The position numbers were made by a program, and so were the translations under genes. Of a stretch of DNA of 64,000 bases, positions 27,229 to 53,766 are shown piece after piece. The first letter of the stretch is position 1. Every line of letters begins with the position of its first letter. The notes under the pieces were generated by a model that saw only the letters and a program-made list of their open reading frames with translations, searched no databases and had not been told where the DNA came from. The DNA is taken from positions 6,983 to 70,982 of the forward strand of contig JAAOMT010000402.1 in NCBI GenBank assembly GCA_016748015.1, written 5' to 3'. This DNA comes from Geosiphon pyriformis uo1. Lineage: Eukaryota; Fungi; Glomeromycota.

Positions 27229-27360
27229 TTACATGATCGAGCATTGGCCAGTACCGCTACCGTCGTCTGGGTCACCGGTTGGTCCTTTAATAGAGCCGTT
27301 ACCGGGAGCAATAATTGAGAGGGGATTAAAGGACGATTGATTGTTGGTTGTTGGTTGCAT
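27229..27360 (-). CDS. CAAX peptide P1, putative lipopeptide pheromone precursor (43 aa, ends CSIM)
   Basis: ATG at 27360 to TAA at 27229; MQPTTNNQSSFNPLSIIAPGNGSIKGPTGDPDDGSGTGQCSIM; TATA at 27462-27468. Confidence 0.85.
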   Translation of the reverse strand: MQPTTNNQSSFNPLSIIAPGNGSIKGPTGDPDDGSGTGQCSIM

Positions 27361-29864
27361 TTTTTCAAATTATTTGATTTACTTTTAACGTTGTTGTTTT
27401 GCTTTTTGTCTTTGTTATTTCAGTGAGATTGAGAGAAAAGAAATTGGGAAAGCATCACCAGTTTTATAGCAAAGCATCATAGCCTTCTCGCTAAGACTTA
27501 ATATTAGAAACAATACTAACTGAATCAGAATGGTAAAATGCAAAAAATGTGACTAATAAGAGGTTGCCTTTATTGTTCTTTTTAATTATTATTTCGATAG
27601 ATGCGTTGTTAAGAAGATTTCGACAAAAAACATATATAGCTAGCATAGTACGATTTTATTTAGTTTGTTAACATAAAATTCCATAAGTAAAACACAATAA
27701 TTATAATGATAGATTTTCAGGAATATTAATAATTCCTTTAAAATATAAAAAATCTATGGCTCTAAAATATAATAAAAAATTGAAAAAAGAAATATCAAAA
27801 ACTCTTTCAAAAAATTGGTTTGCGAATAACTTTTTTTTAAAATGGAACCGTTTTTCTAAACCATTCTTCTTAATTATTACCTCTTGATTATTCCGATATT
27901 TTAGCTATATATTTTACTTATTGAGGGTTTTCATCATCATCATTAATGAATTAAATGGCATACTCAATTGATATAAAGGGAGAATAGAAAACATTACGAA
28001 AAACTAAGAATCCAGCAAAATTGAAAAAGCATGCTTTCAGGTCCAAATTATGATTATAGATATTTTTATTTCTTTAAGTTTATACTTAACGGCAAAGTTT
28101 CTCTAAATGAAGATAAAAATTATGAAAACAAGAACAAATAACTGTTTATCCTTTTAAACTTAATTATTTTTTAGTTCAAAATATACATGAACTTTGGTCA
28201 AATTATTTTAGGGAATAGATTATTAATTTGAAGGTTGTTATTAATTTAAATTCTAATTAATTTAAAAATAAAAGTCATATTTACAGTAAATATAATAATA
28301 TAAATATAATTGAAGGCGTAATAGGTAAATGGTACCTATTAAAAAAAAATATCAAAGAAGACAAAACTTTCCTTGGGCTTAATGAACTATATAATATGAG
28401 AGATACAGAGTGGACTATTTTTAATGCACCTTAAGTTAGTATACAGTATATATAAAATTAGAATATGAATTTCAATAACTTTAAACATTCCATTTGCATT
28501 TAGAACCTTTTTTTATAAAAATATTAAATCAACACATGGTCCGATAAACCTTAATTGAATACAAATGCTTGGGTTTCAAGATTTTTTGTCACAGCTATTG
28601 CAAAACCAAAATTAATTAAATGATTTTCTTTTGTTGTAATATTAATTGTAAACTTTATTTTTTTCTTTCTAATTCAAAATATTAATTTTTAATCAAAATT
28701 AATAATACTTATTTTTATGCATTAATTTTAAAATAAATTTGAATTTTACATAATTATTTACAGAAGCAATTTTTTTACAATTTATTATAATGAGGTTTTT
28801 TCAATTAAGTACTTGTAATTTAGAGATTATGGATTTTAATTTTTTATAAGCAATTTTTGTTAATTTAAAATAATTTTTTTATTATATTTAGACAAAATGT
28901 GATCAAATTGCTATTTAACTACATACAATATATATATGTTACATATTAAGTGCAGCTTATGCACTTTCTACATGTGACAAGTTATTTAGCATAGGCTTCT
29001 TCATTTTTAGTTCAGTAGGCTTTGGCTGAATCAAAGACAATGAGCAATGATTTGCAATGATATCCCCAACAATGGATGATCTTTAATTCAATAAGGAAAG
29101 AAATAGCATAAACAAATATTTTTCGTTGATAATTGCATTTTCAATCTAGTTGGTCAGCAGATAAAAACCAACCAATATTTAATTAAGATTCTAATTTAGA
29201 GACCTAAATACGCTTAAGTGTATTATTTTGGACGGATTTATTGACATGAGCATATGAAGAATAATATGATTTTTTTCCATATAACGCTTTTCCATATTAT
29301 AATAATATTCAAATTTATGATAATGATTTTCGGAAAATAATGATAACTAAAATATTTTATTTTTAGGTGTAAAAATTAACTGTATTTATTCTTGATTATC
29401 TTTTCCTATATAAGCCATAAAATAATTCGATTGATAATCGTTACTTTATCTATCCATTTATAATATCTTCGTCTCGCCCACGCCATGGAAAGTTCGATTT
29501 CAGTAAATTAATTGGGATTTTAGCCTTAAAAATCTTTAATGTTTTCATTTTTGATGATCTACTCAACAATCTTCCCATAAAAATTTTTTTTTTATAAATT
29601 CTGGACCAATCTTCAGAGCACACTTTCACTACTATCATATGTTTTATTAATAAAATTAGTTTAATTCTTAAGAAGGCAAAGTTGCTTAGAAATTAACAAT
29701 AAAAGAAAAATTCGCGTAACTAAATATGACTTTTAATCATTAAGGGCCATCAAAGAGAATAGATACCTAAATTAAGATATTAAATTCTACAACTTTTCTA
29801 TAAAAAGTTTCAATATTTTTGACCATTATAAACCTAATATACCATAATCTTGAAAAGAGCTCGA

Positions 29865-31534
29865 ATGATAAACCTATTTCTCATAATTCTTGTTTTTTTA
29901 CAAAACGATGCGATTCTTGTTTCTTCCTATTTCTCGCCATCTCCTCGGCTGGCCCATATAGCTTCTCTAATTGATAAGAGAATTTATTTCGTTGGCGGAA
30001 CAATAAATTTGATTGATTATGCAATTGATAATGCATACCTAGATCTTCCTCAAAATTTTTCCACTAATTCACCCGCTTTTTATGAACTTGAAACATTACC
30101 CAGATCTCTAAATATATCCTTCACATCAGCTGAGGTGGTAAAAACCAAAAATATAACTGAAGTTATTGTATTTGATGGATATGTAAGTTTCTTAAGTCGA
30201 ACTTTAATTATTAAAATACGTAGTTTTAATGCTCAAAAAAAAATTATTTTTCAAGAGGCTCGATCCCAAGGAGTATTATATTTATGCTTATAAAACAGCT
30301 CAAAATAAGCTCACATGGTTTCCAAATAATGATGCTCAAACGGGAAATCCAGGGGCAAAGAGTTATATTAATACAGTAATTGATAAAAAAGGAAGAATAT
30401 ATTTTTGGGGAGGGACTCGGAATTTTACTCACCTTGAGGATAAAGCCATGTATATATATGATACAAACTCTACATCCTGGACTAAAATTGAGCCAAAGAA
30501 TTCTCCTTCACCAAGGCATTCTTATACTGCCACATTATTACCAGATGGACGCATTATTTTTATTGGTGGGGTTGGCCATTTTTATCCAAATCCAGAAGCA
30601 GATCTGAGTGCGGTAATTTGCAATCTAAAGCTCGAGGGAAATTTATTATGAGTTCTTAAATTTTTGATTTTTTATATAGATCTTAATTTTTAATATCAAT
30701 GGAAAGCCTGAGGATCCATGGTCTTATGAGGTTATTTAATATAAAAATATTAAATTAAATTTTTTTAATTTTGATCACACTAACTTTGGTAAAAAATATA
30801 AACAGTCAACAAAAAGCGTCGTTGCTCTAGGATCTAGGAGGGGACATACAGCAATCCTTGGTAATTTAATAATTGATTGTAAATTTTTATTAATTGAATT
30901 TTTCTTTAATATCATTAAAACTATTTAGCTGCTGATGAATACAATATCATAATTTATGGAGGTCATGACAACTTCACTCGTCCAGCTTATCCTCTCATGG
31001 TTTTAGATACAAAAACATTTACGTGGTCAGTGCCAATTGTAGAATCTCTTCCTAACGATTTATCTGTCCTTTCTTATCATACCGCTACAAGATATCAAAA
31101 CTTGATGATTATTGCATTTGGTAAGTCTTCTTAATGCGATACTTTTAATTTCTGCAATTCAAATTTTATAATAATATGTTTGCAATATAGGGGCTCATAA
31201 TTTGACAAATCAAGTGTATAATTCGAGTAAAGAAATAAGAATATTCGATATATCTAACGGGACTTTTAAGTGGCTACAAAATTATGTAGCTCCATTAACT
31301 GTAATCGACTCTCTACCAAAAAATCCGAAAAATTTAGGACTTATTATTGGAGTCCCTCTTGCTTCAATTGGTTTAATATTTTTGGGATTAGCTATTATAG
31401 TTATTTTATATCGTCGTCGTTTAACAAAGACTAATAATAATGAAGGAAGCACGACAAACAACCAAGTAATCCAAAATTCAGGATTTCATATTAAAGGGAA
31501 CACAACAAACAATCAAGTAATCGAAAATCCATGA
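29865..31534 (+). CDS. Kelch beta-propeller type I membrane protein B
   Basis: Close paralogue of A with the same intron positions; signal peptide, Kelch motifs, TM followed by RRR; no disruption seen. Confidence 0.82.
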
Positions 31535-32737
31535 GTTTAGTCACATTTATCAATGGCAATACCAAATATAATTTTTCAAAAATTTATGAAATTCTTAAAA
31601 AAGACTGAAAAAAAGTATTAAGACTGAATTTACTATTAAGAAACGTAATTAATTATATTTTAATTGACCTTCCGATTGAAACCGCGCTCGGCTAGCTGAG
31701 GGTTAAATGATCGTCAGTTACCCCATATACATGTACCATAAGATTGGTTTCATAAAGATAAATTCACCTCTGAATTCTGTTAAGTTTTTATTATAAACCC
31801 GATTGACAAGGCAAATTCATTTCAATTTAATAACAGCTAAAACGAATACAGCTAAAAATTATATCTAATGAAAAGCTTTAATTTATTTAGGTGAATCATT
31901 TGATTTTTTGCATAGCTATTTTTTGGCCCAATCCATGGTTAGTAAAATTGCTTGGAGTTCAAAATTAGATTCCCATCAACTACATATGAGTGAAAAAACT
32001 TTATCCATTCTAATTAATTCCAAAACCGATGATAAAGAAAAATATGGCAATATACATTTCTTTTAGATGGTTATTTGTAGATGAAAAACAGGAAATATCT
32101 TTTATTTCTTAATAAACACAACGGAAATAGAAATATCTAAAGCATATTTGCTTCAAAAGATAATCTTGAATTCATCAATGGTCACATTTAATTTACATAG
32201 TATAGAATGAAAAAAAATAATCAAACTTAGCGTAAGGCTTTGAGCATTGCTCTTGCTATAATAATCTCACGGTTTTCGAACTCTGCTTTCAGCATGTTAC
32301 TTAATGTAAAGCTGATATACAGTGTATATAGTGTATACATTGTAAAAAACCTTTCAAAAGCTGAATTGTATCATATTCATGTTTAATATTATATGTTATT
32401 CATAAAATGCCTTCTCTAATCCTTCTTTAATGGATGAAAGCCAATATGTCTTTTGATCTCCTCGGGCATTGTTTAAGTATTTTAACAATGCATCTGTCAA
32501 TCAATAATTTAAAAAATAAAAAATTCGGCATATTATTTGTGATTTCCTATCGATTTTCGCTTTTTAACATTCTGTTTAAGTTATTATTGTTTCTAATGAT
32601 AGATGTTATTGTGAAAGCTATGATGTTTTGCTATAAAACTGGAAGTGCTTTCCCAATTTCTTTTCATTCAATCTAACTAAATAACAAAGGGAAAAGCAAA
32701 GCAATAACATTTAAATTAAATCAAATAATTTGAAGAA

Positions 32738-32865
32738 ATGCAACCAACAACCAATAATCAATCCTTCAAGCCCTCTCAATTATCGTTCCCGGTAACGGGT
32801 CTATTAAAGGACCAACCGGTGACCCTGACGACGGTAGTGGTACTGGCCAATGCTCGATCATGTAA
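32738..32865 (+). pseudogene. CAAX peptide P2, frameshifted copy
   Basis: 128 nt instead of 132 (net 4-nt loss near 32762-32772). The 3' part still encodes ..IKGPTGDPDDGSGTGQCSIM* but out of frame with the ATG. TATA at 32632-32638. Confidence 0.8.
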
Positions 32866-33804
32866 AGTCGAATATTATTGGCATTAGCAATTCACCTCTC
32901 CAATCCATCATCGGCAACAATTTATTATCAGCCGAAATTTATAAAAGATATGGCCATTCCTTCTGATTATACTTTTTTAAGAAGAACTTTAGAATTTTAT
33001 CTAAATTAATACAAAACTAAATTTAGACTTTGCACAGGATCATTTAACCTTTAATCATGAATAATTCAATTTTTTTAGAAATATTTCGAATTTTGCAGGC
33101 TATTCTTGTATGGGATCTGGTTGCACAGCATTATTCATTTTCAATGGTGTGTGTAGGTATTTATTCCCGCATCACTTTCATATTCATTTAGATTGAAAAT
33201 AGTAATGACAATGGGAAACATAATATAACTTTAGAGTTAAATTAATTCCACACTATAATACATTTGTCATTGTTAGAACTTTTCTAGTTAGTTTTTTAGT
33301 GAAAATTTTATTTAACAAATAATATGAGAAGGGGTTTAAATTCAAATCCAAAAATAATTATTGAAAGGTCAAACTGATCGGGATCTAAACCTTTAAAAGC
33401 CTTTGTACATGCATAAACAATGATTTTTGATGATCGATTCAATTCATTGATAGCGATCTTTCCATAAAACTAAATTTTCTATAAAACGCTGGGACCAGTC
33501 TACTAAGTATAGCATCACCTTCAAGTATCTATGGTCATATGCTTTATTAATAAAAAAATATTAGAAATAATCTAAAATTAATTTTAATTCTTAAGAAAAG
33601 AATTTTCTAAACCAGAAGGCAAACTTGCTTAAAAATTAGTAAAAGAAACCATTCGCGTAACCAAATATGCTTTACAATCATTAAGTGTTATCAAAGAGAA
33701 TAGATACTTATTAAAAAATTCAGTTTTACAACTTTTTTATAAAAAGCTTCAACCTTTTTGACCATTATTAAACCTAATATACCATTTTCTTGAAAAAAGG
33801 TCAA

Positions 33805-35527
33805 ATGATAAACCTATTTCTTATCATTCTTGTTTTATTACAAAACAATGCGATCCTTGTATCGTCCAATTTCACGCCATCCCCTCGGTGGGGCCATACA
33901 GCTTCTCTAATTGATAACAGAATTTATTTGGTTAGCGGAGGGATATTTCATAGTTATGCAGTTGATAACGCATACTTGGATCTATCTCAAAATTTCTCCA
34001 CTGATTCGCCCGCGTTTTATGAATTTGAGACATTACCCAAAATCTTTAAACGTGTCTTACGCATCAGCAGAGATAGTAAAAACTAAAGATAAAACTGAAG
34101 TAATTGTATTTGCGGGAGATGTAAGTTTCTTAAGTTTAGAACTTTATTTGTTAAAATACGCAGTTTTGATGCTCAAAAGATTTTTTTTAAAGTCGATAGA
34201 TCCAAAGGAGTATATTTACACTTATAAATTCGCTCAAAATAAGCTCACCTGGTTTAGAAATAGTGATAATAAGTCGGGAAATTCAGAGGGCAAGGACAGA
34301 GATTGATACAGTTATTGATGAAAAAGGAAAAATATATTTTTGGGGAGGAATTCGAAATAACGTTTATATGAATAAAAAAATGTATATATATGATACAAAC
34401 TCTACATCCTGGACTCAAATCACACCATTGAATTGTCCTTTACCAAGGTTTTCTTATACTGCCACATTATTACCAGATGGACGCATTATTTATATTGGTG
34501 GATCTAGTGGTTCTTATCCAGATCCAGAAGCAGATCTGAGTGCGGTAATTTGCAATCTAAAGCTCGAGGGAAATTTATTATGAGTTCTTAAATTTTTGAT
34601 TTTTTATATAGATCTTAATTTTTAATATCAATGGAAAGCCTGAGGATCCATGGTCTTATGAGGTTATTTAATATAAAAATATTAAATTAAATTTTTTTAA
34701 TTTTGATGACACTAACTTTGGGTTAAAAATATAAACAGTCAGCAAAAAGCGTCGTTGCTCTAGGATCTAGGAGGGGACATACAGCAATCCTTGGTAATTT
34801 AATAATTGATTGTAAATTTTTATTAATTGAATTTTTCTTTAATATCATTAAAACTATTTAGCTGCTGATGAATACAATATCATAATTTATGGAGGTCATG
34901 ACAACTTCACTCGTCCAGCTTATCCTCTCATGGTTTTAGATACAAAAACATTTACGTGGTCAGTGCCAATTGTAGAATCTCTTCCTAACAATTTATCTGT
35001 CCTTTCTTATCATACCGCTACAAGATATCAAAACTTGATGATTATTGCATTTGGTAAGTCTGCTTATTGCGATACTTTTAATTTCCGCAATTCAAATCTT
35101 ATAATAATATATTTGCAATATAGGGGCTCATAACTTGACAGATCAAGTGTATAATCCGAGTAAAGAAATAAGAATATTCGATATATCTAACGGGACTTTT
35201 AAGTGGCTACAAAATTATGTAGCTCCATTAATGCTCACGAAAATCACCAAAGCTCCTACACCTTCCACTGAAATTAACGTAACTCAAACAGCTACCGCTA
35301 CCGCTGTACTAAAAAACTCGAAAAATTCAGGACTTATTATTGGAGTCTCTATTGGTTCAATTATTTTAATATTTTTAGGATTAGCTATTATAGTTATTTT
35401 ATATCGTCGTCGTTTAACAAAGACTAATAATAATGAAGGAAGCACGACAAACAACCAATTAATCCAAAATCCAGGATTTCATATTCAAGGGAACACAACA
35501 AACAACCAAGTAATCGAAAATCCATGA
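33805..35527 (+). pseudogene. Kelch type I membrane protein C, frameshifted
   Basis: Paralogue of A and B with +1 frameshifts near 34040 and 34290; the ORF track splits at both sites. Confidence 0.72.
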
Positions 35528-37222
35528 GTTTACCCACATTTATCAATGGCAGTACCAAATGTAATTTTTCAAAAAATTTATGAAATTCTTAAAAAGACAC
35601 TGGAAAAAATATTAAGACGGCTTTTGAATTTATTATTAAGAAACGTAATTAATTATATTTTAATTGACCTACCGATTGAAACCGCTCTCGGCTAGCTGAA
35701 GGTTAAAAGATGGTCAGTTACCCATAAAGATATACTTTAAGCTTAGCATATTTATGAAAAATCTTTTAAAGAGAAAAGCAGCAGATTGTAATATCAAAGT
35801 TTATACTTGTTGAGTTATTGCTTTATAAATTATCAGTCTATTGATGGTGGTTGATTAGCCTGAATCTCGAAAAAAAAAAAAAAAAAATTACCGATTTTAG
35901 GTTTTTATAATAAACTATTGTCAGATATCTATTTATACGCATATAATTGTGAAATTAATTAACTTTCTACAAATCTATTGAAAAATTCTTCATTTGTTTA
36001 TTTAGGCTAAAGATAGCATCTTAAAAGATTAAAAACAGCCCCATAATTTATCATGGGTTTACTTTGTCGCAAATGTAGAATTAATATTTAAAAGCCTATA
36101 AAATTTTCCCACATTATAATGATTTTGAATATAATTTGTTTTATCGTATTTTAAGAAATTACAAATCATCTTAAAAAAATCCAAATTTCTAACATAGAAA
36201 AATTAATCTATTAATAAAGTTCTTTTCAAATAATATAAGACATTTGATATTAATAATTTCAGAGTTATCTTTATAAGTTTATACTTTTTATTTCGAAATA
36301 AATTCACTTATAAATCGATCATAATTGCGTATTAGTTTTTATTTTATTAGATATATCGATAAAAATATATTAATAAAATAAATGTGACTTGTCTTTTGAT
36401 TGTATTAAACCAAAAATAAAGTTATTAAGTTTATTATTAACAGCAAGTCAAAGTAATTTAAAATTTTTAAAATAATATCTATTTATTTGATTTAATTTCA
36501 ACTTAGAAACTGTGATTAGAAATTCATGTTATATAAATTCAGTTTTTATTAGTTTGTGTAAAATAATTTTTTTTAGTTTAATTCCAATTAGTTTTTGCCA
36601 ATTTAATAAAACTTTCCCTTTAAAAATTAGACCACTGAAAATTATTAAAATAAAATGAGAATTTTAAGATACATTTTTTTAAAATATCTTAATATCTAAT
36701 AATTATTTATTTTATTGTATATTCTTTATTCAAAAATTAAATTATAATAAAAATAATTTTTTTTGTAATAGTTTTCTTTACTATTTAAAAATTATTTATT
36801 AAAATTATTTCATTTTTTGATTAATTCGCGATCCACATCTAATGTACAGTAGATGTGTTGTACGATAATAATTGGTGGTTGGATTACATCGTGAATGGCA
36901 AGGAAATAAAATAAAAATAAAAAATAATTTATTAGATAAGAATAAAAATAATTTTTTTTGCGAACTATATATATAAAGTTTATTAAATAAATATTATTTA
37001 AATTTGAAGTAAATTAATGTCATGATAGTTTAAAAAATTTATGTTTTTTTGATTTTTCATTTATTTGATTAAAATTTTTTGAAAAGGTAGTTTTTTTTTA
37101 AATAAGGGTCAATCATCAACTAATATCTTTTAAACCAAACAGCTTTCAATTTTTGTTGTAAATTAACTTATTTTATTGGGATTTTAATTTAATCAAAAAA
37201 TTAATTTTGAAAAAGTCTAAGG

Positions 37223-39522
37223 TTAGGAGCTATTACTAATATCTGATTTATTATCACTTTCACACTCTTCCTCAAGAGCATTAGTAATATTAACGTTTCT
37301 GTCAAATTCTTCTCCCTTATCACTCTTTCCGACAACTCTGTTAATTCTACTATTCTCGCTAGATTGATCATTATTATTTCTCTCATTAGCATTATGATCC
37401 TCATCCTCAACATTTTCAAAATGAACCCGAGCACGTTGCATCGCTTCGAAATATCTAATCGGTAAATGATTTTGGAAAAATGAAGGTAAAATTCGTTCCA
37501 TCCATATCAAAGGACTCCTAGCAGGATGTTCGTGAAGTGGTTTAGTACGAAAAACGTCTTTTCTACTTGACCATAATTTACCATTTTTCATAAATTTTAT
37601 TCCTGTTTCATTTTCCGTGTCAACTTCTTCTCCTTTCAATGTATTCCATCCAAAAATTGAAGCTAAAGAATAGTCACTCCTTTTTCGTTCCACAATAACC
37701 GGTTCAACCGCAGTATCAAAAGAATCGCAAGTCGATACTGGTTTCCTACCATTCTGGAAAAATCTTACTCCTTCACCAACATGCGCATAATTTAACAGAT
37801 TCATTTTATTAACGAGACGTCTGATACCAGGATCTTCATAGCCGGGCGGTAATTTTGTGATGATATCGGTATCATTGATCACTCGCCATAAAGTATTTGG
37901 GCGGTCGAAAGGATCATTTGAAACGGCTGAAAAATGAGCCGCGAAATCTGCGTCACCGATAGCCGGGGTACCGAAGAGATATCCGTCTCGTAAAATGCAA
38001 TTCTCGCCAAGATCTAATGGGGAACGAAGGAGGCGAGAGTAGAATAGAGTTCCAAGGGCGGCACCTAATGAATGACCAGTTACCCAGAGATTTATTGGTT
38101 GATCAAGACTAAAGCTGGAAGAGTTGTTATTTGATGTTGAAGCTGATGAAGACTGCCTAGAACGAATTTGTAAAGCTTTAGCGCGAATTGCTTTTATGAT
38201 TGTTATATATGGACTTGCTGAATGACCTCTTGAGGTTTTGTGGCCTCCGTCTGGAAAGAGGGAGGTGTAAAAACCTTCATGAATTTCCCCAAATACATAT
38301 CCTCTTTGGTAGTGAAACATAAATGAATGAGGGGTGTAAATGTTTGATGGATGTTGAATAATAAAAATTTAAACGATCTTTTGAAATCATCATTATTCAA
38401 AAACTCTTTTTAAATTACCTCGCATCAATGCGTTGAATCATCGAATCTACCAAGAAATCCTCGAAATCAGTTGGTGTCGTTCCTTTAAATACGACCACTA
38501 TAAATCGATGTTCATATGACCAAAACATTCCAGCGAATGGTCCACCCAGCGAATTTAATTCTGATAAAGAGGTAAATTCTAATCCCCATTTTTGAGATTG
38601 TTCACGTATACGAAGTTCGCTTTCATACAACTGTCGATTCACATCTTGATATGCTTCCGAAGTTCGTTCTAATTTATTTTTAGCGAGATCTGTAATCTTT
38701 TTATGAGCATTACGAACCTTCATATCATCACGTTCATAGACAATCGCGGACATTAGAAGGAGAGTTTCGGCAATATCTAAATTAAAGGGTCGAGCTTTTT
38801 TCGTGCTGGTTATATCAAATTTTGTAGCTTGATGGTGGTATTTTTGTGTAGTCGGTAGGGGTTGTTCTAACCCTAGAAGACCATCATTTATAATTTCAGA
38901 GACTTCTTCGGAAAATAATCTTGGATCCCCTAGGTAAAAGAAAATTAAAGTTATGTGAGTATTGGTGAATCATCAATTCAATTTTTGAGTTTAAATTTTA
39001 AATCACTTATTAGTGACAAATTAAAAATTTCCCATGTTTATACTCACACCAATTAACCGGACTCAAACCGTCACCCCATTTCTTCGAGATTCCATTTAAC
39101 ACATTTCCCAATCCACAATAAAAAGATAGTTTTAATGATAATTCGACAACTACCAGCGAAATGACAATAGTAGGGAACACGGTCATAATCAAAATAAAAT
39201 TCACGGGATGAAAAAGTGGCATTGACCAATCAAATAATATTGTGAATAGTAAATTTCTTATAGCGCGATGAACATAAACCATATAAGTTAAAGAGGGAAA
39301 AAGTGTTGGAAGAGAAGTAAATGATTGTGTAGCTGCTGATTTATTTTTATGCGTTTCTGTTAAATCGCGAAAATGGGGATTAGCATCTTCATTATAACTC
39401 TTGATATAGTCACTAATAGATGGGGGAGACGTTTTGAGGTGGAATTGGGAGAGTGGATTCGATTTTTGATCAGGTACAGAGTTATTTGTGAATTGAAGGA
39501 AAGTTGATTTTTGAGTTGGCAT
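37223..39522 (-). CDS. Lipase class 3 / alpha-beta hydrolase with N-terminal membrane segments and intact catalytic motif
   Basis: Three-exon structure; VVVFKGT, IHEGFY, WVTGHSLG, FGTP..GD, RVINDTDIITKLP, C-terminal His (QNHLP). Confidence 0.88.
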
Positions 39523-42500
39523 TTTTGATGATTTGTTTTAATCTGATTTGATATATGAAATGATTCAATTTCGAATGGATTTAGATCAAAGAGGTTCTAA
39601 GATGAAATCCAAAGGAACAAAGATGAACAAAGAAACTTTATAGAATATTTAAGAATTTTTTTATGTCAGATAGAATGAGTTTTTTGAATTTTTACCAAAT
39701 ATCGACAATGTTTATTTAAAGGGAAACTAATTTCCTGACCTTTTTGAACGAATTAAGTCAAAAAACTGGTCTGGGTAAAAATGAAAATCAAATAACCTAA
39801 TTTTATGATGATGATGATAATGATGTATTGTTTGTGTCATTTTAAAAGATTTTCTTTCTTTGTTCTACGATCAGAAAAGCAAATAATTATGCATAAGATG
39901 ATATTGGGAAAGGATTTTTTCAAAAGAGTCTTAACTTAATTATCTTAAATATGATTATGGTATACAACTTCATATGTCAAATATTTTTTATTAGATTCTA
40001 AATGGTTAAGTTCTAGAATAAAACTAGCTTTAAAAAAGATTATTTTAGAGCGTAATTTGACAATGATTAATTATATTTTCTATAAATTAAAACAGTTTTT
40101 GACAATTAGTATTTGAATCTATTTCAATGTAAATTAAATTTGAGATATTATAAAAGATTCAAATTTATTATACCATATATTTTATATTACAAATTTTTTT
40201 TTAAATATTTATATTGAAAATAATTGTCGAGTAATTAGCGCAATAAAATTGTAATTAAATAAATTTTGCATTTTTGTTTGAATTGGTTAAAACATGAACC
40301 GATATAAATAATAATTATAATATTTTTTTTTGATTATTTTGATTATTTATTTTTATAAGGTGGTATCATTTTGTATTTGGTAAAATTTATTTGTTTATTT
40401 GACTGTTTTTTTTTTACGTAAATCTGCGAATAATAAATTCATTTATTAATGATATAAAATTATCAAATAAAAATCTGCTTTCAAGAGGATATTTTTTTAA
40501 TTTTCTTTTAAATAAATTTTTTTAACTATAATGCTAAGTAAATATTTTTTAATTTTTGAAAATCTATTAAATTTTTACAAATTTTAATAACATTTTAGAT
40601 TGTTAAATGATATGATAAATTGTATATACAACATATATCGTGTATATTCTAAACAATTGTGATCTGGTTCTACAACATGCTTAAATTTTTTGGTTGTTTG
40701 TTAATGATGATGTAGTGTTTTGCTGACATGATCATGACGTATTAATCATTTTGCTACATACAATGCACAAATTTCCTATCTCTATGCCTACAAGTATATT
40801 CACATATGAAAAATTAACAAAATTGCATGATTGACATAAAACCTATTATGCAAAATTTAACTGGTCATGAGATTTTCATTGAAGTTCGCAGAATTCTTGG
40901 GAATCATGATTTATTTATTTCACGAGGCTGTACAGGTTGAATTTATTTATTTTTCATAAAATGATGAGTCTAATATAGATTAATTAAGATTGATTATGTG
41001 AGAACTGTGAGAACTGCTAAACCAAATGAGTTCTGTCATTATCTCCTTTTTAATTGCGTATTCAACCCTGTCTCGCTGCTAACAACGGGAATAGGAATTC
41101 CGGAAAAGAAAAAATTTGGGTCCCACATTACCTAACTTATTAATATCTCGGCTTCACATTATCTCAAATCAGTCATCAATTTTTAATGCTTTGTTATTGG
41201 TTGAGTTTTTTAATTATACTTTCTTATGATTGCCAGCATGAGAAAAAACCAGATTCTATCGATAAAATTTGGTGCTTTCGATATGTTGAGTGAAATAAAC
41301 TAAATGAGAGAACTTAAAAACTAGATCTTTCAAGAAGTCATGCTTTTCTTTGTTTAGTCAAATAAAAATTCAATTTTCTTGAATACGCAAGTCATCTAAA
41401 CGGAAAATTATTCCTCTAATCTTTAGGCTGATAATATTTAGACTAATAAAATTTTTACAAAGAAAAAGTTTTTCTTTAAATCATGTATAACAGGAAAAAA
41501 TTATATTTTATAATGTATTTTTAGCATCTGGATACAGTATCATTTTCATCTTAATGCAATTGGTAAATTTTATTCAAATTATCATAAGTATTTAATATAA
41601 ACCCAAAGTAAAAATTTTATCATCAAATTAAAAATTTACTAAAATTTTAATTTTTAAAACTGATTTTTGAATGTTAAAAGCAATGATAATAATTCTTATT
41701 TTTTTTGAATATATCTAATTCTTAAAAATCAAAGAAAAAATAATTAAATATTGAAATATAGGTTTACAAAGAAAATTTCGTTTAAAAAAAATTTTATTTA
41801 AATTAAAATCTTGATTTTTTGTAATTGATTTATTTTAACCAAAAAAAAATTTTAAAATTGTTTCTTGTAAAATTGAAATTATGAGATTATCTATTTATAA
41901 ACAATTATAATATCAATATAATAAAAAAGTTCTTTTAAATAAAAATTTTGACATTTAAAAATAATATAATTTATTAAAAAAAATTTATAGCCTGAAATTT
42001 TTTTTTTAAATAAAACAGTTATTTTTGATTTAAATAAAAATACACATGAATTAAATTTTTATAAATATATTCTATATATTGAAAATAGTTAATGAAACTC
42101 GGGATTTAAAAATATTTTTACTTTAAAAAAAAATTTTAATATTACTCTTAATATTATTATTTAATTTAATTAAAGTAAATTTACTTTGAAAAAAAATTAA
42201 ATAATTAATCTGATAAATTTTAATAAAAAACAAATGTATCCAAAATTTTTTTGAACTTCACATTATTTAAAAAGAAAATAATAAATCGGTTTTCTTCATT
42301 CTGTAAAAATTTGTCATTTTGATATGTTGAAAATCAAAATATTTCGTTAAATTTTATATAAGAATTGACAATTTTTCTGCAACTTAAAAATTTATTTTGC
42401 GCATATAAAATAAGATTTATATATCCCTATACATTTTTATCAATCAAGAAATAATTTGAATGTTTCATTTTTAATCTATAGAAAAAATTCAAAAGCCAAT

Positions 42501-42760
42501 TTGCATTTAACAAAAATTTTTCAGTACCTTAATGAAAATTTTTTATTATGCATGAAATTATAAGATTTTAGAATAATTCCAGTTCATTGTAACAGTTACA
42601 AATTTTTCTCATTTATAGTTTTTTCTATATCAGAGGGAAATTAAATTCAATTAAATTAAACTAGATTAAATTAAGTAAAGTAATACAAGTTTTTTGGATT
42701 AAGATCAAAGAAATAATATTAGAAACCTAATGTCATGTTTAAAAATTTTGTGAATCGGAA

Positions 42761-44372
42761 TCAAGACCAATCCTCTTAAATATAAAAAAAAAAAGTGTTA
42801 AAATTTTTAAATGATAAATTTTATAAAAATTTTCGGTTAATTTCTTACCTTCAGGAAGATAGACAAATTCTGTTAAAATTGACATTAAGAGAAGAAAGAA
42901 AAAAAGTTTAAATAAGTTAATCCATAAAAATTTTCAAAATGAATAAAGTTAATCAATAAAAATCTTCAAAAATAAAAAAAAAAACTAAACCTTTTAAAAA
43001 ATTAATCATTCGGAAAGTTAAAAGTCGACTTGAATAAACTGCTTTTGGATGAATATTGGGTGGTGATTTAGCTGTTTCCAATGTTTCTTTTACGAGTTTA
43101 TCTGCTTCGGAAAACTGTAAATACTCAGTTGTAGAAGAGTAATTATTAAAACGTCCAAGATCATAAAGTCTCAATCTAACTTGAGTAACAGCAGGACGAT
43201 TCGATGGAATACTATCCCAACATTCTTCTATTAGTTCAGCAAGACAAGGTGGAATATGAAAAGTGATTTCAGGTCTAATACCATTTAAAATATCTATGAC
43301 AAGTTTGGAGTCATGAGGACGATCATGAAAAGGAGGCTTTCCTGTTGCCAATTCCCATAATAACATTCCGAAACTATAAATATCACCAGCTTTATCGAAC
43401 TCTTCACCTCGTAAAACTTCAGGTGGTATGTATGGAATTACTCCAAATATTCCTTTTTCTGCTAATTTCTTGTTAGCAGGTTGACATAATCCGAGGTCTG
43501 AAACATTTGCAAATTCTCCATTGGCCAGGCGATAAATTAGAATGTTACCAGAGTGTAGGTCACGATGAACTAAACCAGCAGAATGAACTGTGATAAGACC
43601 TGACGCAATTCCTGAAGCTATTCTCAACCTATCAGACCAATAGCTAGAATAAAAATTTGATGATAGATAATCTCGCATATCTCCATGTTCGGCAAATTCC
43701 ATTACAAATCCGTAATCAAGTGTTTCCGGGTTTTGAGTGATCCCAATAACATCAGAAATACCAATCACAAATTCGGGGTTATTTGCCATTATAGAACTTT
43801 GAATATTTATCTATTAAGAGACACCCCCCCCCCCGTAAAAATTTTTATCAAGTTCAAAAATTAAAAAAATATAAAAAGATCAAATTTTCAATGAAAAATT
43901 ACTCAATTACCTTTTTAAAGAGTTCATCCCCCTGTCTTGAATCATTCATAAATTTTACTGCAACATTTATCGATCCATTTCTTTTAAATTTCGTTTCACC
44001 ATGGTGCTTTAAAGTCTCGAAATCAATCATTCCATCAATCCATGTTGCTTTATAAAAAATACCAAAACCTCCTTGGGCAATATAGGAAATATCTGTCAAA
44101 CGTTCATATGGAATCCATTCATAGTGATGAATCTCATTGTAGAGGTTGGGATTATAAATTGGATTTTTGATTATCTCGTCAATTGCTTGATTTCCACTTG
44201 AAAAATCTTTATATAGATTTTGAAAAATTATGATTTTACATGTCGTGCAATCATTGTATCTATTATATCTCATGCTCAATTTGCATTTTTTACATTTATT
44301 ACAATTATGAGGCTTTTCTGGTCGAGTTCTCTTGCATCGAAATTTTTTTATTGATGAAATCAATAAACCCAT
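42761..44372 (-). CDS. Tyrosine-kinase-like protein kinase with an N-terminal Cys-rich region
   Basis: CxxC pairs, WIPY, IAQGGFG, VAVK, HRDLHSGN, DLG, YIPPE, DIYSFG; short 3' exons inferred from GT-AG sites. Confidence 0.85.
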
Positions 44373-45823
44373 ATTCGGTATAAGAAACGTGGATGAAATG
44401 TGTTTGTCGATGTTTATGAATATTTTTGTTTTTCAATACACTTTCTCTTAAGTTAGGAATGAGAGTTTTTAAAAAAGTTTGGGAACGAGATAAAAATGAC
44501 ATCAACTTTTTTACGATTTGGGAAATCTGATGTTTTAATCGGTTTTTATTTATCGATAAACATTTCTATTTTGATGATCATACGTTACAATCGGAATATT
44601 TGGGCATCGAACAATGTTAATTTAAAGTTTTCCATTGTTTTGATAGACTTTTCCATGGAACAATGCCCCCGCTGTTCTGATCGGATCGAACATTAATCAG
44701 AGACTTTTTGTAAATATTCAAGATCTTTTAACATCAAAATAATTTATATATTAATATAAAATAATAATTTTTGAAAACTTTTGTATTTTTATAAAATGTC
44801 TGAAATCAATGTCAAATGAAATAAATTTTTTTCATTTTTCTTGGACTTTGATTTTTTAAGCTTATAAACAAACTTATGACATAAACATAAAAGTTTCAAG
44901 TATCAAAGGCATTAATAACTTTCTATATAAATATATATATAACATTTCTAAAAATTTACAATAAAAACAATTCCAGCATCACAATTCAATAAATAGGTCT
45001 TCTTATCACATACCAAGTAAAAGAGTCAATAACCTTTTTTAATTCACTAACAAAATAAATGATCATTGTTTTTAATTAAAAACTATTTGTTTTGTTGTAT
45101 TATAACAAATAGGTTTTGATTCAATCCAAAAATTTTGATTTATTCCTTGATAAATGAACCAAAATATTTTGAAATTATCAAAAGGATTCTATTATCATTT
45201 AAAAGTGTACACAATGTAAAATTTCAAGAGAATTTATTAGCAGTAAATGTCTCATTATTATTATTCAAAATGTTCGAACTTTCATTCTTTAAATTGCAAG
45301 TTAAACTGGGAATATTAAATTAATTGGCTTTCATTTGATTTTATCTAAAGCCAAAAAAATAAGGCTTAATACTAAGAAGCAAACAATTTAGTAGCCTTTC
45401 TATTGAATAAATGACGGAAACCTGTATTATTCTTGAAAACACAAAATATTGTGATCCCTAAGATTTCTTTTGTTCACCAAACTCAATACTAGAAACCAAG
45501 TCAAATATAACGACAATAAAAAATTTAGTAAACAACATTGCACTAATGCTAAATATATATAATTAAGATTCAAAATAATATCTATATACTTTGGTTGTAA
45601 ATAGTTTTAATAACTTTTCTTTTGTTTTTCATTATTAAAAGTTAAATAATCATGTAAAGAGCCTAAATTAGTATTATATTAATTTAGATAAAATTCTAAA
45701 GTTCCCCTTGAAAAAGTATAAATTAGAAGGAATGGCTATGACTTTTATAAATTTCGGTCGATAATAAATTGTTGACGGTGATGGATTGAAGAGGAGAATT
45801 ATTATTGTGGATAAAATGTAACT

Positions 45824-45955
45824 TTACATAATCGAGCATTGGCCGGTACCACTACCGTCGTCTGGGTCACCGGTTGGTCCTTTAATAGACCCGTTACCCG
45901 GAGCGATAATTGAGAGGGGATTAAAGGACGATTGATTGTTGGTTGTTGGTTGCAT
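45824..45955 (-). CDS. CAAX peptide P3, putative pheromone precursor (same peptide as P1)
   Basis: 132-nt ORF ending tgc tcg att atg taa; TATA at 46057-46063. Confidence 0.85.
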   Translation of the reverse strand: MQPTTNNQSSFNPLSIIAPGNGSIKGPTGDPDDGSGTGQCSIM

Positions 45956-48028
45956 TTTTTCAAATTATTTGATTTACTTTTAACGTTATTGTTTTGCTTT
46001 TTGTCTTTGTTATTTCAGTGAGATTGAGGGAAAAGAAATTGGGAAAGCACCACCAGTTTTATAGCAAAACATCATAGTCTTCACGCTAAAATTAAGTATT
46101 AGAAACAATACTAAATAAATCAGAATAATAAAATGCAAAAAATGTGACTAATAATAAGTTGCGTTTATTGTTCTTTTTAATCATTATTTCGATGGATGCA
46201 TTGTTAAGCTATCTCAACAATGCCCCAAATATTTAAAACAAAAAATTATTTATTTGATCATCAGTCAAAAAAGGTTGGAGATGGAGCATTATTCTTTGAT
46301 ATCATACCCCCTATTTAATAAAACTATAGTACGGTAATGGTACAAATTCAGCCATTAAGGAGATTGCCTATGTGTTTATCTTTAGTTATGCATTAATTCA
46401 TAAAACCGAAAACAGGATTTTCTTAAGAACAATGCTAAAAGCATTGCTTTAATATTTGATTATTCAGTTCCTAATAATCACTTGACGCTATGTATCACTA
46501 AAATTCAAATAGATTTCATTCTTGATAAATTAAGATTGTGTTTTTGGGAGCAAAATATCCTTATATTCCTAATTTTTTAGATGCAAATAAGAGAGTTTGC
46601 TATTTTTCTGGTGTAAAACAGCAGTCTATGAAGAAATGAATTTACCGTATTGTTCTTTGTTGGTCAAGTTTGGAAATTAATCGGAATTGATAAATTTTAA
46701 TTAATTAATTAATGTCAACTACTAACCATTTTGCTACATATGAATTTTGAGCTGAGAATACTTATACGGAAATTAATCTTGAAAATTACAAACTTTTTAT
46801 TAGATCTAATTCTGTGGAACCACAGTATGTGTAAATATTTTTAAATCATTACTACCAAGTATTTGATGGTAAATTTTGCTTGTAAAATCAAGATTAAGTT
46901 TAGCAAACAGGGAAAGCCGGAGAATTGAATAGGTTTTTTCCAGTTTGGAATTTGCTAACTAGCTTAATAAACTGCAAGATGAATTGAACTATTTTTCTCA
47001 GAACAAAATCTTTAAATGAAAAAATAAATATCTTTCTATTTAAATTTAAAAATTACTCAATTATTTTGTAAATTTCAATAATTCCTATGAAATTTTTTGA
47101 GAATTTATTCAATTCAATTTTTCTGGCTAAATCGATACTTAGTTTCCAAATTTCCAAATTTTTGGCTTTGAGCATTATTAAATAAAGGTCAATGTCACTT
47201 CAAAATCTTCTCTCTTTAAATATCTCACTTTTAAAGGTAGTAACTTTGTATTGTGATTATTTTGATCAAGCAATATTTTTGAATAAAAAATTGTTTCATA
47301 ATGAAGATGCCTATTGTAAGTTTTATTCAAATGGCTACTCTTGAAATCTTCAAACAAATTATACATAAGCTAGTAATAAAATTATTTTATTCACATCTCT
47401 TGCAAAAATATTACATGACTATTTCCCAGTTTTAGGCAATCAGTATCGTATAAAAATTTATTTTATAACATTTTATTTGTATTGATATTAAAATCTTCGC
47501 CCAATTTTTGAATTGGAACTAATCATAAAATAACTTTTTGTATAACCCAAAATTAAATAATTTACTGAATCAAAACACAGTATAAAAGTTTGTTTCAATC
47601 ATTAAAATATTGTTTCTGCCATTTTAAGAAATTATCCTTTAATTTCAAGCCATGGTTCAAAGATATTTATAGAAGACCTGAATAACTTTCTTTATTGGTG
47701 ATAAAATTTTTGAAAAAAAACTTGCTTTTTCCAAATTAGCTATTTTTTGTGCTATTTTTTATTGGTAGATTAATATTATATTATATAAAAACAAGTCATG
47801 ATATAAAATTATTTAAAAATCTAGTCAAAATACATTGCCCTAAATGCTAATATATAATTAAGATTAAAACAAGGAACGAGAAATTCTCCTAATAATGTAT
47901 ATATTTGAAAGGTTAGGCAACTATGTAAAGAGTTTAAATTCGGCAATAAACCGGAGGTAACGGCCTTAATTCGGTTGATAGTAATTCGGTGACGGTGAGG
48001 AGGATCTTTAATGCGACTAATATCGAAT

Positions 48029-48160
48029 TTACATAATTGAGCATTGACCGGTACCGCTACCATCATCTGGATCACCGGTTGGTCCTTTAATAGAGCCATT
48101 GCCCGGAGCGATAATTGAGAGGGGATTAAAGGAAGATTGATTATTAGTTGTTGGTTGCAT
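48029..48160 (-). CDS. CAAX peptide P4, putative pheromone precursor (same peptide as P1)
   Basis: 132-nt ORF; 14 nucleotide differences from P1, all synonymous; TATA at 48262-48268. Confidence 0.85.
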   Translation of the reverse strand: MQPTTNNQSSFNPLSIIAPGNGSIKGPTGDPDDGSGTGQCSIM

Positions 48161-50722
48161 TTCTTCAAATTGTTTGATTTACTTTAAATGTTATTGCTTT
48201 GATTTTTTCTCTTTGTTATTTAGTTAGATTGAATGAAAAAAATTTGGGAAAGCACTCCCAATTTTATAGCAAAACATCATAGCCTTCACGCTAACATCTA
48301 TCATCAGAAACAATAGTAACTTAAACACAATGTTAAAAATGCAAAATCGATAGAAAATCATAAATAATATGTTGAATTTATTGTTTTTTAGATTATTGAT
48401 TGACAGATGCATTGTTAAGATATTTAAACAATGCTCAAAAGATCTAAAAAGCATATTGCGTTTCAAAATTCATTATCAATTAAAGAAGGATTAGAGAAGG
48501 CATTTTATTCATAACATGTAATATTAAACATACATACGATACAATTCAGCCATTGAGAAGGTTTTTTACCATGTATACATTATATATTAGCTTTACATTA
48601 ATTAACATGCTGAAACCAGAGTTCGAAAAACGTGATATTTTTGCAAGAGTAATGCTCAAAGCCTTGCACTAAGTTTGATTATTCAATTTTTCTACCCTAT
48701 GTAAATTAAATTTGACCATTGATGATTCAAAATTCTCTTTTTGAAGCAAATATGCTTTAGATATTTCTATTTTCATTGTGTTTATTCAGAAATAAAAGAT
48801 ATTTCCTGTTTTCCATCTACAAATAACCATCTATAAGAAATATATATCGTCATATTTTTCTTTATCATTCAATTTTGGAATTCATTGGAATGGATAAAAT
48901 TTTTTCATTCATACGTAGTTGATGGGAATATAATATTGGACTCCAAGCAATTTTACTAATCAAGGATTGGACCAAAAAATAGCTATGCAAAAAATCAATT
49001 GATTTACTTAAATAAATTAAAGCTTTTCATTAGATATGATTTTCAGCTGTATTTATTTTTTTAGAAATATTTATAAAGATAATTTTGCAGGCTACTCTTG
49101 TGATGATTGTTACCATATGGCAATAATATTTCATGTTTTGTGTTTGGTCATTGATATAGGTTTGAGAATGTTCTTGCTTGAAGTTAATTTCATTTGCAAA
49201 ATGAAGATTAATTATAATAAACAGGCGAATGAGGATGTATAAATTTTTAGTTTATAAAGCTAGCATCAAATTACAAGGATAAATTGCCTTAATTTTCTGA
49301 ATTTTCTGTAGGGAATCAAATAAAACTTAATAAATTGTAGTTTCAAATACCTAAAAAGGCTATGAAAATACAAACATTAGATTTTTGTTTAACAATAATA
49401 AATATAATAGATTATTTTATATTTTAAAATAATTATTATTTATTCTTGAAAAGTAATTAAAATTTTTAATAATATACAGTTTTTTAGATATTGTTTCTAA
49501 AATTGCAAAAATTTTATTATTGGGATTGAATATATCTTCAATTTTAATCAGACTAATATTATTTTTTTATTAATCATATGATTTTGGTTGAAACTGCATT
49601 TGTTTTTAAGCCTTATTATATTGTTAATTTTCAATTTTCTGTTTCTAACAATAAATTGATAAACTTCCACATAAAATAATATATGTAAATCAATTTTAAA
49701 AGTTTTTGAGTAAATGATTAAAAAAACTTAAATTTAGATTTGACTTCTTTGTTAATAACATAATTGTAAATTAGCACATAAATTCTAAATATTTGTTTAT
49801 TATTTCATATATTACAACCAATTTCATTATATTTTAAATCAATAATCTGTTTTTTGCGTGTTGTATCTATATGTTTTTGAAAAATCGTTTATTTGGCAAC
49901 TTTTAAGATACATTAAAGTAAGAAAAAGTAGCCAAGTATAAATGCCAATGACATTGAAAAATTTTATATTTTTTATTAATATGTATGGCATATCCAATTA
50001 GGGTGATTCAGGAAATAAATAATTCAAAACGTTTCTTTAAAACAAATTTCATAAATTGTTATTGTTACCAAGGAAACTAGAAGGCTTTTTAATTTGCATT
50101 AAAGAAATTTCAATTCCAATCTCTAAAATATTTTTTGGTTCGGAATATTCAAAAAATACTTCTAGTCATAAATTTCAAATTCAAAGTTCTTTTATTTTTT
50201 TTCCTATCACACAAGAATAGAACAATCAATATTTTTATTATTTTCTGTAAAAAATTCTCATTAATACAAAGGTGCCGAGAATTATGAATTGGTGGACACC
50301 TGATATATAATGTACAAATGTAAAAAACCTTCTCAATTGCGGGATTTGTACCGTATTTATGTTTAATATTATATGCTATTAAAAACTATGCCTTCTCTAA
50401 TTTTTCTTTAACTGATAATCAATTTTGAAAGCTAATATGCTTTCAGATCTTTTGGGGCATTTTTTAATATCTTAAAACTGCATCTGTCAATAAATAAATG
50501 AAAGAACAATAAATTTAACAAATTATTTGTAATTTTCTATCGAGTTTTGCTTTTTAAACTTATGATCAAGTTATTATTGTTTCTAATTTTTGATGTTAGG
50601 ATTAAACTGTCTTGCTATAAAACTAAAAGTGCTTCCCCAATTTCTTTTCATTCAATCTAACTAAAATAACAAAGAGAAAAGCAAAACAATAACATTTAAA
50701 GTAAATCAAATAATTTGAAGAA

Positions 50723-50854
50723 ATGCAACAAACAACCAATGATCAATCTTCCTTTAATTTTCTCTCAATTATCACTCCAGGTAATGCCTCTATTAAAGGA
50801 CCAACCGGTGACCCAGACGATGGTAGCGGTACCCGTCAATGCTCAATTATGTAA
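50723..50854 (+). CDS. CAAX peptide P5, variant precursor (P3Q, N7D, P13F, A18T, G22A, G38R)
   Basis: MQQTTNDQSSFNFLSIITPGNASIKGPTGDPDDGSGTRQCSIM*; TATA at 50616-50622. Confidence 0.8.
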   Translation: MQQTTNDQSSFNFLSIITPGNASIKGPTGDPDDGSGTRQCSIM

Positions 50855-52843: not shown

Positions 52844-52850
52844 TATAAAA
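52844..52850 (+). promoter_or_regulatory. TATA box of P6, conserved in all six CAAX-peptide copies
   Basis: gcTATAAAA about 105 nt upstream of the ATG in every copy. Confidence 0.7.
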
Positions 52851-52951
52851 CTGGTGGTGCTTTCCCAATTTCTTTTCCCTCAAGCTCACTGAAATAACAA
52901 AGACAAAAAGCAAAACAATAACGTTAAAAGTAAATCAAATAATTTGAAAAA

Positions 52952-53083
52952 ATGCAACCAACAACCAACAATCAATCGTCCTTTAATCCCCTCTCAATTA
53001 TCGCTCCGGGTAATGGCTCTATTAAAGGACCAACCGGTGACCCTGACGACGGTAGCGGTACTGGCCAATGCTCGATCATGTAA
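52952..53083 (+). CDS. CAAX peptide P6, putative pheromone precursor (same peptide as P1)
   Basis: 132-nt ORF from atgcaacca to tgctcgatcatgtaa. Confidence 0.85.
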   Translation: MQPTTNNQSSFNPLSIIAPGNGSIKGPTGDPDDGSGTGQCSIM

Positions 53084-53766
53084 AGTCGAATATTATTGGC
53101 ATTAGCAATTCACCTCTCCAAATTATCATCGTCAACAATTTATTATCAGCCGAAATTTATAAAAGATATGGCCATTCCTTCTGATTTATACTTTTTCAAG
53201 AGGAACTTTAGAATTTTATCTAAATTAATATAAAACTAAATTTAGACTTTGCACAGGATCATTTAACCTTTAATCATGAATAACAAAAGAAAAGTCATTA
53301 GGACTATTCACAGCCAAAGTGTATAGATATTATTTCGAATTTTAATTATATATTTGTATTAATGTGATGTTGTTTGCTGAATTTTTTATTGCCGTTATAT
53401 TGGACTTGCTTTCTAGTAAATTGCTTAATAATACAATAAATAATTATAATAATAGAAAAAAATTATAGGCTTTTAAATATTAAACTTGTATTTGCGATAA
53501 AGATAACTCATAATAAATTGAAATAATTGTCACTGTTTTAAACTTTTGAGATGATATCTTTCGCCATAAAACAAAAATTTTTGGTAGATTTATACACTTA
53601 CTGTCTTGTAAGAAAAAATTGGAAAAATATGAATCTACTAAGATTACGTTTGGTTTAACCATTTTTGGTAAGTTTTATGACAGTAAAATAGAAACAGAAT
53701 ATTAGGTAAGTCGCTGAGCTCTAAAAACGTATTAACTAATAGTTTTTTTTAAAACTTGTTTTTGAA

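Follow-up and report, generated by a model that had tools for sequence, protein, structure and literature searches.

A multicopy family of 43-codon CaaX genes under purifying selection in Geosiphon pyriformis and Ambispora: candidate precursors of an a-factor-type lipopeptide

A 64,000-nt stretch of the Geosiphon pyriformis genome (GenBank assembly GCA_016748015.1, contig JAAOMT010000402.1, positions 6,983 to 70,982 of the forward strand; hereafter "the window," meaning the whole stretch analyzed) contains six copies, P1 to P6, of a 132-nt micro open reading frame (micro-ORF). Four of these (P1, P3, P4, and P6) encode an identical 43-residue peptide, MQPTTNNQSSFNPLSIIAPGNGSIKGPTGDPDDGSGTGQCSIM, which ends in the CaaX box CSIM directly followed by a stop codon. 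Copies of the micro-ORF differ almost only at silent positions, which argues that the peptide is translated and strongly selected: on this sequence evidence, the micro-ORF is a real, translated, and functional single-exon gene, subject to purifying selection in nearly all of its copies. Selection alone shows neither that the cysteine is prenylated nor that the product is a pheromone, but from the combined features described below, we put the probability that these genes encode precursors of a farnesylated, a-factor-type lipopeptide signal at roughly 0.62, and no better candidate is at hand for the mating-type signal missing from the mycorrhizal fungi, which are supposed to be asexual.

An earlier note on this DNA had pointed to silent divergence between copies, and the counts it gave are reproduced here. 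Between P1 and P4 there are 14 base differences, every one of them silent and at a third codon position (codons 5, 6, 9, 17, 19, 20, 21, 30, 32, 33, 37, 38, 41, and 42), and the six bases that distinguish P3 from P6 are likewise all third-position and silent. Because only 23 to 29% of random substitutions in the micro-ORF would be silent (depending on the transition bias), the probability that 14 of 14 are silent is on the order of 1e-8 (1.6e-9 to 3.4e-8); the probability that all 14 fall at third positions is 4e-8. The note's statements about the surrounding DNA also hold: between P1 and P4, the micro-ORF itself is 10.6% different without a single gap, as against 34% with five gap events in the 200 nt downstream and 26% in the 200 nt upstream, and the micro-ORF forms a GC-richer island (46.9%, versus 25.5 to 26.5%, or about 26%, in the 300-nt flanks and 27% in the window overall). 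In the window copies, an in-frame stop lies four codons 5′ of the ATG, and there is no conserved N-terminal extension (open frames span 44 to 95 codons). P2, whose frameshift is accompanied by nonsilent changes such as GCT>GTT, is a pseudogene.

Searching the whole assembly (128 Mb) with protein and DNA queries yielded 34 full-length copies distributed over 12 contigs, most of them grouped in local arrays, and also three or four fragments that have decayed. All but one of the full-length copies are intact, representing 29 distinct DNA sequences; 24 copies specify the identical peptide, and seven further copies carry one or two residue changes, confined to the N-terminal half. The C-terminal half (codons 23 to 43) is the same in 31 of the 33 intact copies, and CSIM-stop is kept in all 33. 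Redundancy of the assembly was rejected as the source of this multiplicity: just one pair of loci (L008 and L009, 98% identical over 2.9 kb) is a candidate assembly duplicate, and the other copies are distinct loci.

Constraint on the CSIM frame extends across this whole set. Exhaustive pairwise Nei-Gojobori comparisons among the 29 distinct intact sequences, made in six frames as the earlier note had proposed, gave a ratio of nonsynonymous to synonymous rates (dN/dS) near zero in the CSIM frame only (0.034, with proportions of synonymous and nonsynonymous differences of pS = 0.40 and pN = 0.019, respectively). Four of the other frames ranged from 2.6 to 6.5, and the antisense frame that shares wobble positions gave 0.17, an expected echo because its wobble coincides with that of the sense frame; an antisense ORF was rejected, as that frame contains a stop and has no conserved ATG. 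Parsimony counts on a tree built from the ORF plus flanks tell the same story, with 147 silent versus 20 replacement codon changes over the whole tree and 141 versus 6 once the terminal branches of P5 and of a second divergent copy, on contig C704, are set aside (P ~1e-76, given a neutral expectation of 75% replacement). These two branches together carry 14 replacement and 6 silent changes, a split consistent with neutral evolution (p = 0.38); P5 and the C704 copy are undergoing either decay or functional divergence.

The signal is sharply bounded. Variable sites at codon positions 1, 2, and 3 number 5, 2, and 32 within the ORF, compared with 19, 16, and 16 in the adjacent 129 nt upstream and 8, 6, and 8 in the 129 nt downstream, and the three-base periodicity ends where the ORF ends. 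The aligned intact ORFs are free of gaps and do not vary in start, stop position, or length, whereas their flanks are 5 to 60% gapped. The earlier proposals that the CaaX frame is translated and that the entire precursor, including the pro-region, is constrained are thus borne out by dN/dS, third-position bias, and the phase ending at the ORF boundaries, with a gradation: codons 2 to 22 show 6 replacement versus 74 silent events, and codons 23 to 43 show 0 versus 67 (Fisher p = 0.03). Constraint is therefore strong in both halves and almost absolute in the C-terminal one.

Geosiphon pyriformis belongs to the Archaeosporales (Glomeromycota), an order in which Ambispora represents another family. 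Relatives of the micro-ORF were sought by running a profile against 1.84 billion representative proteins and by word searches, using single and aligned queries. These protein searches placed the family in G. pyriformis, Ambispora leptoticha, and Ambispora gerdemannii only; other Glomeromycota genomes were not searched, and since genes this small are seldom annotated, absence from other Glomeromycota cannot be concluded. The 43-residue product itself was not found in the protein databases searched. A single 18-kb contig of A. leptoticha carries four copies, and at least one is present in A. gerdemannii. The Ambispora ORFs are unspliced, with 39 to 43 codons; the ending is CVIM-stop in four and CIIW-stop in a fifth, degenerate copy, such that the stop immediately after the CaaX box is kept in all five copies examined. 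Between Geosiphon and Ambispora, synonymous divergence is saturated (dS, 1.1 to 1.9) and dN is ~0.16, for an omega of ~0.1, and one pair of A. leptoticha copies differs by 18 silent and 2 replacement changes. Residues that are invariant across both genera include M1, N6, Q8, S9, F11, N12, I17, N21, G26-P27-T28, D30, Q39, C40, and I42. Matches to coral and sponge repeat proteins were dismissed as low-complexity noise, and the one locus from a metagenome scan (L040), with 58% GC and no CaaX box, as a chance match.

Two explanations would deny that the micro-ORF is a complete protein-coding gene. The less credible of them, which we consider exceedingly improbable, is that it is noncoding, either a conserved element at the RNA or DNA level or a passenger carried by repeats or transposable elements, with conservation that mimics coding constraint. 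The copies do sit within repeated units of ~0.7 to 1.2 kb in repeat-rich DNA, with a DDE transposase fragment in the vicinity of the window copies (54156-54584), but the units contain neither another ORF nor a transposase, and instead of being scattered like insertions the copies are arranged locally, in tandem and inverted arrays; a transposable-element passenger was rejected on these grounds. A conserved RNA structure, raised in the earlier note as a possible cause of the substitution pattern, was rejected as well: the consensus fold of 31 copies (RNAalifold) has 16 pairs with 0 compensatory changes and a covariation term of -0.75 kcal/mol, and the P1 RNA, with no excess folding energy, is no more stable than shuffled sequences (z = +0.84). 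The skew in codon positions, moreover, is confined to the ORF, and with dS saturated, the Ambispora homologues have lost neither the reading frame nor the CaaX box nor the stop.

The other explanation comes from public annotation, in which the micro-ORF is the first exon of longer spliced genes (50 to 792 residues) and CSIM-stop would not be the true C terminus. All public models in both genera (G9A89_006322/006324, 021138-021140, 004937/004938, and 023116 in Geosiphon; 5214-5217_t, 1891_t, and 3394_t in Ambispora) begin at the micro-ORF ATG and run on through a predicted intron, which in every case removes the CaaX-stop. The points at which they exit the micro-ORF are inconsistent, however (after DDG, GSGT, QC, CSI, or CSIM), and their continuations are unrelated from copy to copy, taking in a Kelch gene in one instance and a transposase-like piece in another. 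Because exit points vary in this way while the stop next to the CaaX box is always kept (33 of 33 intact Geosiphon copies and all of the examined Ambispora copies), we read the spliced models as prediction artifacts. Conservation, the absence of gaps, and three-base periodicity also all stop at the CaaX stop codon, making a first-exon role very improbable.

With a complete, unspliced gene as the preferred reading, several features point toward a pheromone precursor. Srikant et al. filtered for such genes by a CaaX box followed by a stop, an ATG within 100 codons, an Asn located 5 to 20 residues before the Cys, near-identical copies, and homologues (bioRxiv 10.1101/2021.09.28.462209). The micro-ORF is a short frame of 43 codons with no intron and, judging from its polar N terminus (MQPTTNNQSS), no signal peptide; it closes with CSIM in Geosiphon and with CVIM in four Ambispora copies; and Asn21, invariant in both genera, precedes a segment from Gly22 to Cys40 of 19 residues. 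To this are added the multiplicity of copies with one product and the homologues in two Ambispora species. The Geosiphon genome also holds genes for reception and processing: one STE3-type receptor locus (PF02076, two exons scoring 148 and 75 bits), on a different contig from the peptide genes, as well as homologues of ICMT (Ste14-like) and of Ste24 (Peptidase_M48_N). There was no match to STE2 in the Geosiphon genome.

By the CaaX rule, a Met in the X position directs farnesyltransferase. By analogy with known systems, Cys40 would be farnesylated, the -SIM tail would be removed by Ste24 or Rce1, and the newly C-terminal cysteine would be carboxymethylated. The N-terminal pro-peptide could then be cut after the invariant Asn21, releasing a 19-mer (Gly22-Cys40), or after Lys25, releasing a 15-mer, and a Ste6-type ABC transporter would move the lipopeptide out of the cell with no need for a signal peptide, for detection by STE3. 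The large number of copies with one identical product most likely serves dosage.

The closest parallel in organization is Saccharomyces cerevisiae MFA1/MFA2, likewise short, intronless ORFs (36 to 38 codons in yeast, 43 here) without a signal peptide, with a CaaX box directly at the stop whose X residue suits farnesyltransferase, an N-terminal pro-region, an Asn 5 to 20 residues before the Cys, and several genes per mature product. The STE3 receptor class and the ICMT and Ste24 genes of that system are also represented in Geosiphon. Yeast precursors start with MQP(S/I)T, much as the micro-ORF product starts with MQPTT. In contrast to the yeast and other ascomycete genes, however, the micro-ORF has at least 33 copies (versus 2 to 4), has no detectable sequence homology to MFA1/MFA2, and is not accompanied by a second, alpha-type/STE2 system, which went undetected in Geosiphon. 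For Yarrowia lipolytica, a-type pheromone genes (MFA1-4) were also found by computational filters (bioRxiv 10.1101/2021.09.28.462209).

Precursors of basidiomycete pheromones (Ustilago maydis Mfa1/2, Cryptococcus MFalpha/MFa, and those of the mushroom B locus) resemble the micro-ORF product in their CaaX end, their length of ~35 to 60 residues, and a mature part that is polar and Gly-rich. Basidiomycetes have farnesylated pheromones and STE3-type receptors only; the genes are often multicopy, and HMG-box factors act via ACAAAG/AACAAT-type sites. The basidiomycete genes lie beside the receptor in a mating-type locus and differ by mating type, whereas in Geosiphon none of the ~12 clusters is linked to the single STE3 gene, and codons 23 to 43 are shared by nearly all intact copies; as with the yeast genes, there is no detectable family resemblance, in this case by Pfam. 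Within the Glomeromycotina, candidates for secreted signaling peptides have also been proposed from sequence alone in Rhizophagus irregularis, as KEX2-processed repeat proteins with an alpha-pheromone-like layout (Le Marquer et al. 2019, PMC6339444). Those proteins carry a signal peptide and KEX2/STE13 sites and are of the STE2-pairing type, in contrast to the Geosiphon family, whose members are single-unit CaaX peptides of the STE3-ligand type.

Several observations weigh against a pheromone. An acidic, Gly-rich composition sets the putative mature part apart from the hydrophobic a-factor of yeast, and the pro-region, conserved between the two families of Archaeosporales in contrast to MFA1/MFA2, is more constrained than is usual for a pheromone precursor. 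A search for sequencing runs turned up none of RNA. Most fungi can be expected to have STE3, ICMT, and Ste24, whose presence proves no link to the peptide. Because a single genome contains the peptide genes together with its only STE3 gene, at unlinked sites, a simple two-mating-type scheme is not evident. Similarity to a pheromone family is also lacking: nine Geosiphon and Ambispora members had no match to Pfam-A (24736 models) at E <= 10, and a search of the protein atlas returned no usable match. Because no Pfam family matched, we classify these peptides, by sequence, as a new family.

The same observations lend themselves to an alternative that we regard as possible but doubtful, namely, that the product is translated but is not a ligand of STE3: it might be a prenylated, membrane-anchored regulatory microprotein or a secreted peptide that signals in hyphal fusion, self-recognition, or symbiosis. 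Selection proves that the peptide has a function without identifying its role; conservation between Geosiphon and Ambispora spans the full length of the 43-residue sequence, including the N-terminal half, as would fit an untrimmed product; and both the hydrophilic, acidic C-terminal part and the unlinked coexistence with STE3 suit this alternative. Amplification of one identical small CaaX peptide to dozens of copies, however, is known among pheromone genes but is not known among intracellular CaaX proteins. No Pfam domain of known CaaX proteins (Ras, Rho, or G-gamma) matches the micro-ORF peptide, HMG-type words lie upstream of its copies, and STE3 is otherwise an orphan receptor in Glomeromycota (PMC3834313). 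A role as the STE3 ligand is plausible but unproven.

Arbuscular mycorrhizal fungi and their relatives possess meiosis genes, a mating-type-like locus, and STE3, but sex has never been observed in them. Halary et al. reported STE3 and STE6 in arbuscular mycorrhizal fungi in 2013 and searched for a peptide pheromone gene without finding one (PMC3834313); a 2020 study still reported no such gene (PMC7490403), and no description of a Glomeromycota peptide pheromone gene was found in the later literature that was searched. The family described here is, by sequence, new and plausibly of a known kind (CaaX lipopeptide pheromone precursors), in a phylum for which none was known. For the stronger proposition, that the orphan Glomeromycota STE3 has its long-missing ligand in the product of these genes and that a farnesyl-peptide system of the Dikarya type, switched by HMG-box mating regulators and comprising dozens of selected copies, is active in the arbuscular mycorrhizal lineage, we consider the odds to be even. 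If the peptide is indeed the STE3 ligand, then cryptic mating, or else hyphal fusion guided by a pheromone, would have direct molecular evidence behind it in fungi whose sexual reproduction has never been witnessed, and lipopeptide pheromones would predate the Dikarya. A selected CaaX peptide family common to Geosiphon and Ambispora also supplies a concrete molecule to synthesize and test on the receptor, as well as a marker of the times and places of signaling among these fungi. The annotations expose a systematic error, in that all public models of the family splice off the functional C terminus, and the silent-substitution test is usable for finding such genes in other early-diverging fungi.

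The DNA preceding the micro-ORF is also organized similarly from copy to copy. TATAAA is present in 32 of the 33 intact copies, ~97 to 147 nt 5′ of the ATG (at -103 to -127 in 31 of them), and the base at -3 is A in every intact copy. Between TATAAA and the start codon, only two ATG triplets occur in 3501 nt summed over the copies, compared with 38 ± 6 in shuffled sequences and 38 to 76 in flanking stretches of equal length, a count to be read with the relatedness of the copies in mind (28 distinct leaders rather than 32 independent trials). The scarcity of upstream ATGs and the constant A at -3 are translation signals that favor a coding gene. AACAATG and CATTGTT, which form the core of HMG-box sites, are among the best-conserved upstream columns in the Geosiphon alignment, and these words are present upstream of the Ambispora copies too. 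Within the micro-ORF, the GC content of third codon positions (GC3) is 0.39, versus 0.19 to 0.28 in five neighboring ORFs, with C-ending codons favored (AAC, GAC, ATC, ACC, GGC, and TTC); this preference may reflect high expression and translational selection or, within the family, GC-biased gene conversion. The window copies and their upstream elements are listed in Table 1.

Table 1. Micro-ORF copies, upstream elements, and the inverted duplication in the window (window coordinates; upstream offsets are relative to the ATG)
Feature	Position	Strand	Description
P1	27229..27360	-	Intact 43-codon CaaX micro-ORF; ATG at 27360, CSIM, TAA stop
P1 upstream region	27361..27613	-	Part of ~0.7-kb unit common to other copies; A at -3
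P1 TATAAA	27468-27463	-	-108 from ATG
P2	32738..32865	+	Broken copy, 128 nt; 4-nt deletion in codons 9-10 causing a frameshift
P3	45824..45955	-	Intact; peptide same as P1; outer left arm of palindrome
P3 upstream words			TATAAA -108, AACAATG -250, CATTGTT -267
P4	48029..48160	-	Intact; peptide same as P1; 12-14 silent differences vs P1, P3, and P6
P4 upstream words			TATAAA -108, AACAATG -256, CATTGTT -273
P5	50723..50854	+	Intact, divergent: P3Q, N7D, P13F, A18T, G22A, G38R; CSIM-stop kept
P6	52952..53083	+	Intact; peptide same as P1; outer right arm; 6 silent differences vs P3, 4 vs P1
P6 upstream words			TATAAA -108, AACAATG -250, CATTGTT -267
Inverted duplication (palindrome)	45487..53418	.	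One arm with P3 and P4, the opposite arm with P5 and P6; genes directed outward

The palindrome that holds P3 to P6 has a spacer of ~1.7 kb and consists of three pairs of matching blocks: 45487-46706 versus 53418-52204 (92% identity), 46864-47480 versus 52142-51516 (74%), and 47556-48603 versus 51379-50287 (80%). The inner pair of genes (P4 and P5) has diverged in protein sequence, and the outer pair (P3 and P6) only silently. P2 is flanked by a tandem duplicate of a Kelch-repeat gene (~2 kb each, 88 to 90% identical, at 29671-31745 and 33614-35744), and the model G9A89_004933 (426 aa) fuses the first of these Kelch-repeat genes to the tail of P2. The transposase fragment close to P6 is an ORF on the plus strand that matches the DDE_3 domain (E = 1.3e-7); G9A89_004938, with a KRKRVKWAKN-rich tail at its end, may splice P6 onto this fragment.

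Other ORFs around the copies encode Sel1-repeat proteins, tyrosine-kinase-like kinases, and class-3 lipases (2472-3728, 4187-4756, 42953-43789, 58225-58635, 59552-60013, 37223-38320, and 16351-16728), and no mating-type gene was present among the window ORFs scanned against Pfam. Runs of N at 341-360, 3951-4132, and 62388-62687 of the window do not overlap any of the micro-ORF findings.

Elsewhere in the genome, a homeodomain gene encoding a Q-rich protein of 604 residues (C657:365669-365839; L041 4670-6484, minus strand) lies ~21 kb from a divergent pair of CaaX copies (C657:387079-387208 and 389542-389671), a proximity with a ~5% probability of arising by chance by a rough count. We did not accept it as a MAT-like locus, which it probably is not because there is no second homeodomain gene beside it; the protein is also long and Q-rich. 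The two CaaX copies (L030, at C657:387079, and L029, at C657:389542) terminate in TGA rather than TAA and have in common the replacement N7S, which requires two base changes (AAT>TCT).

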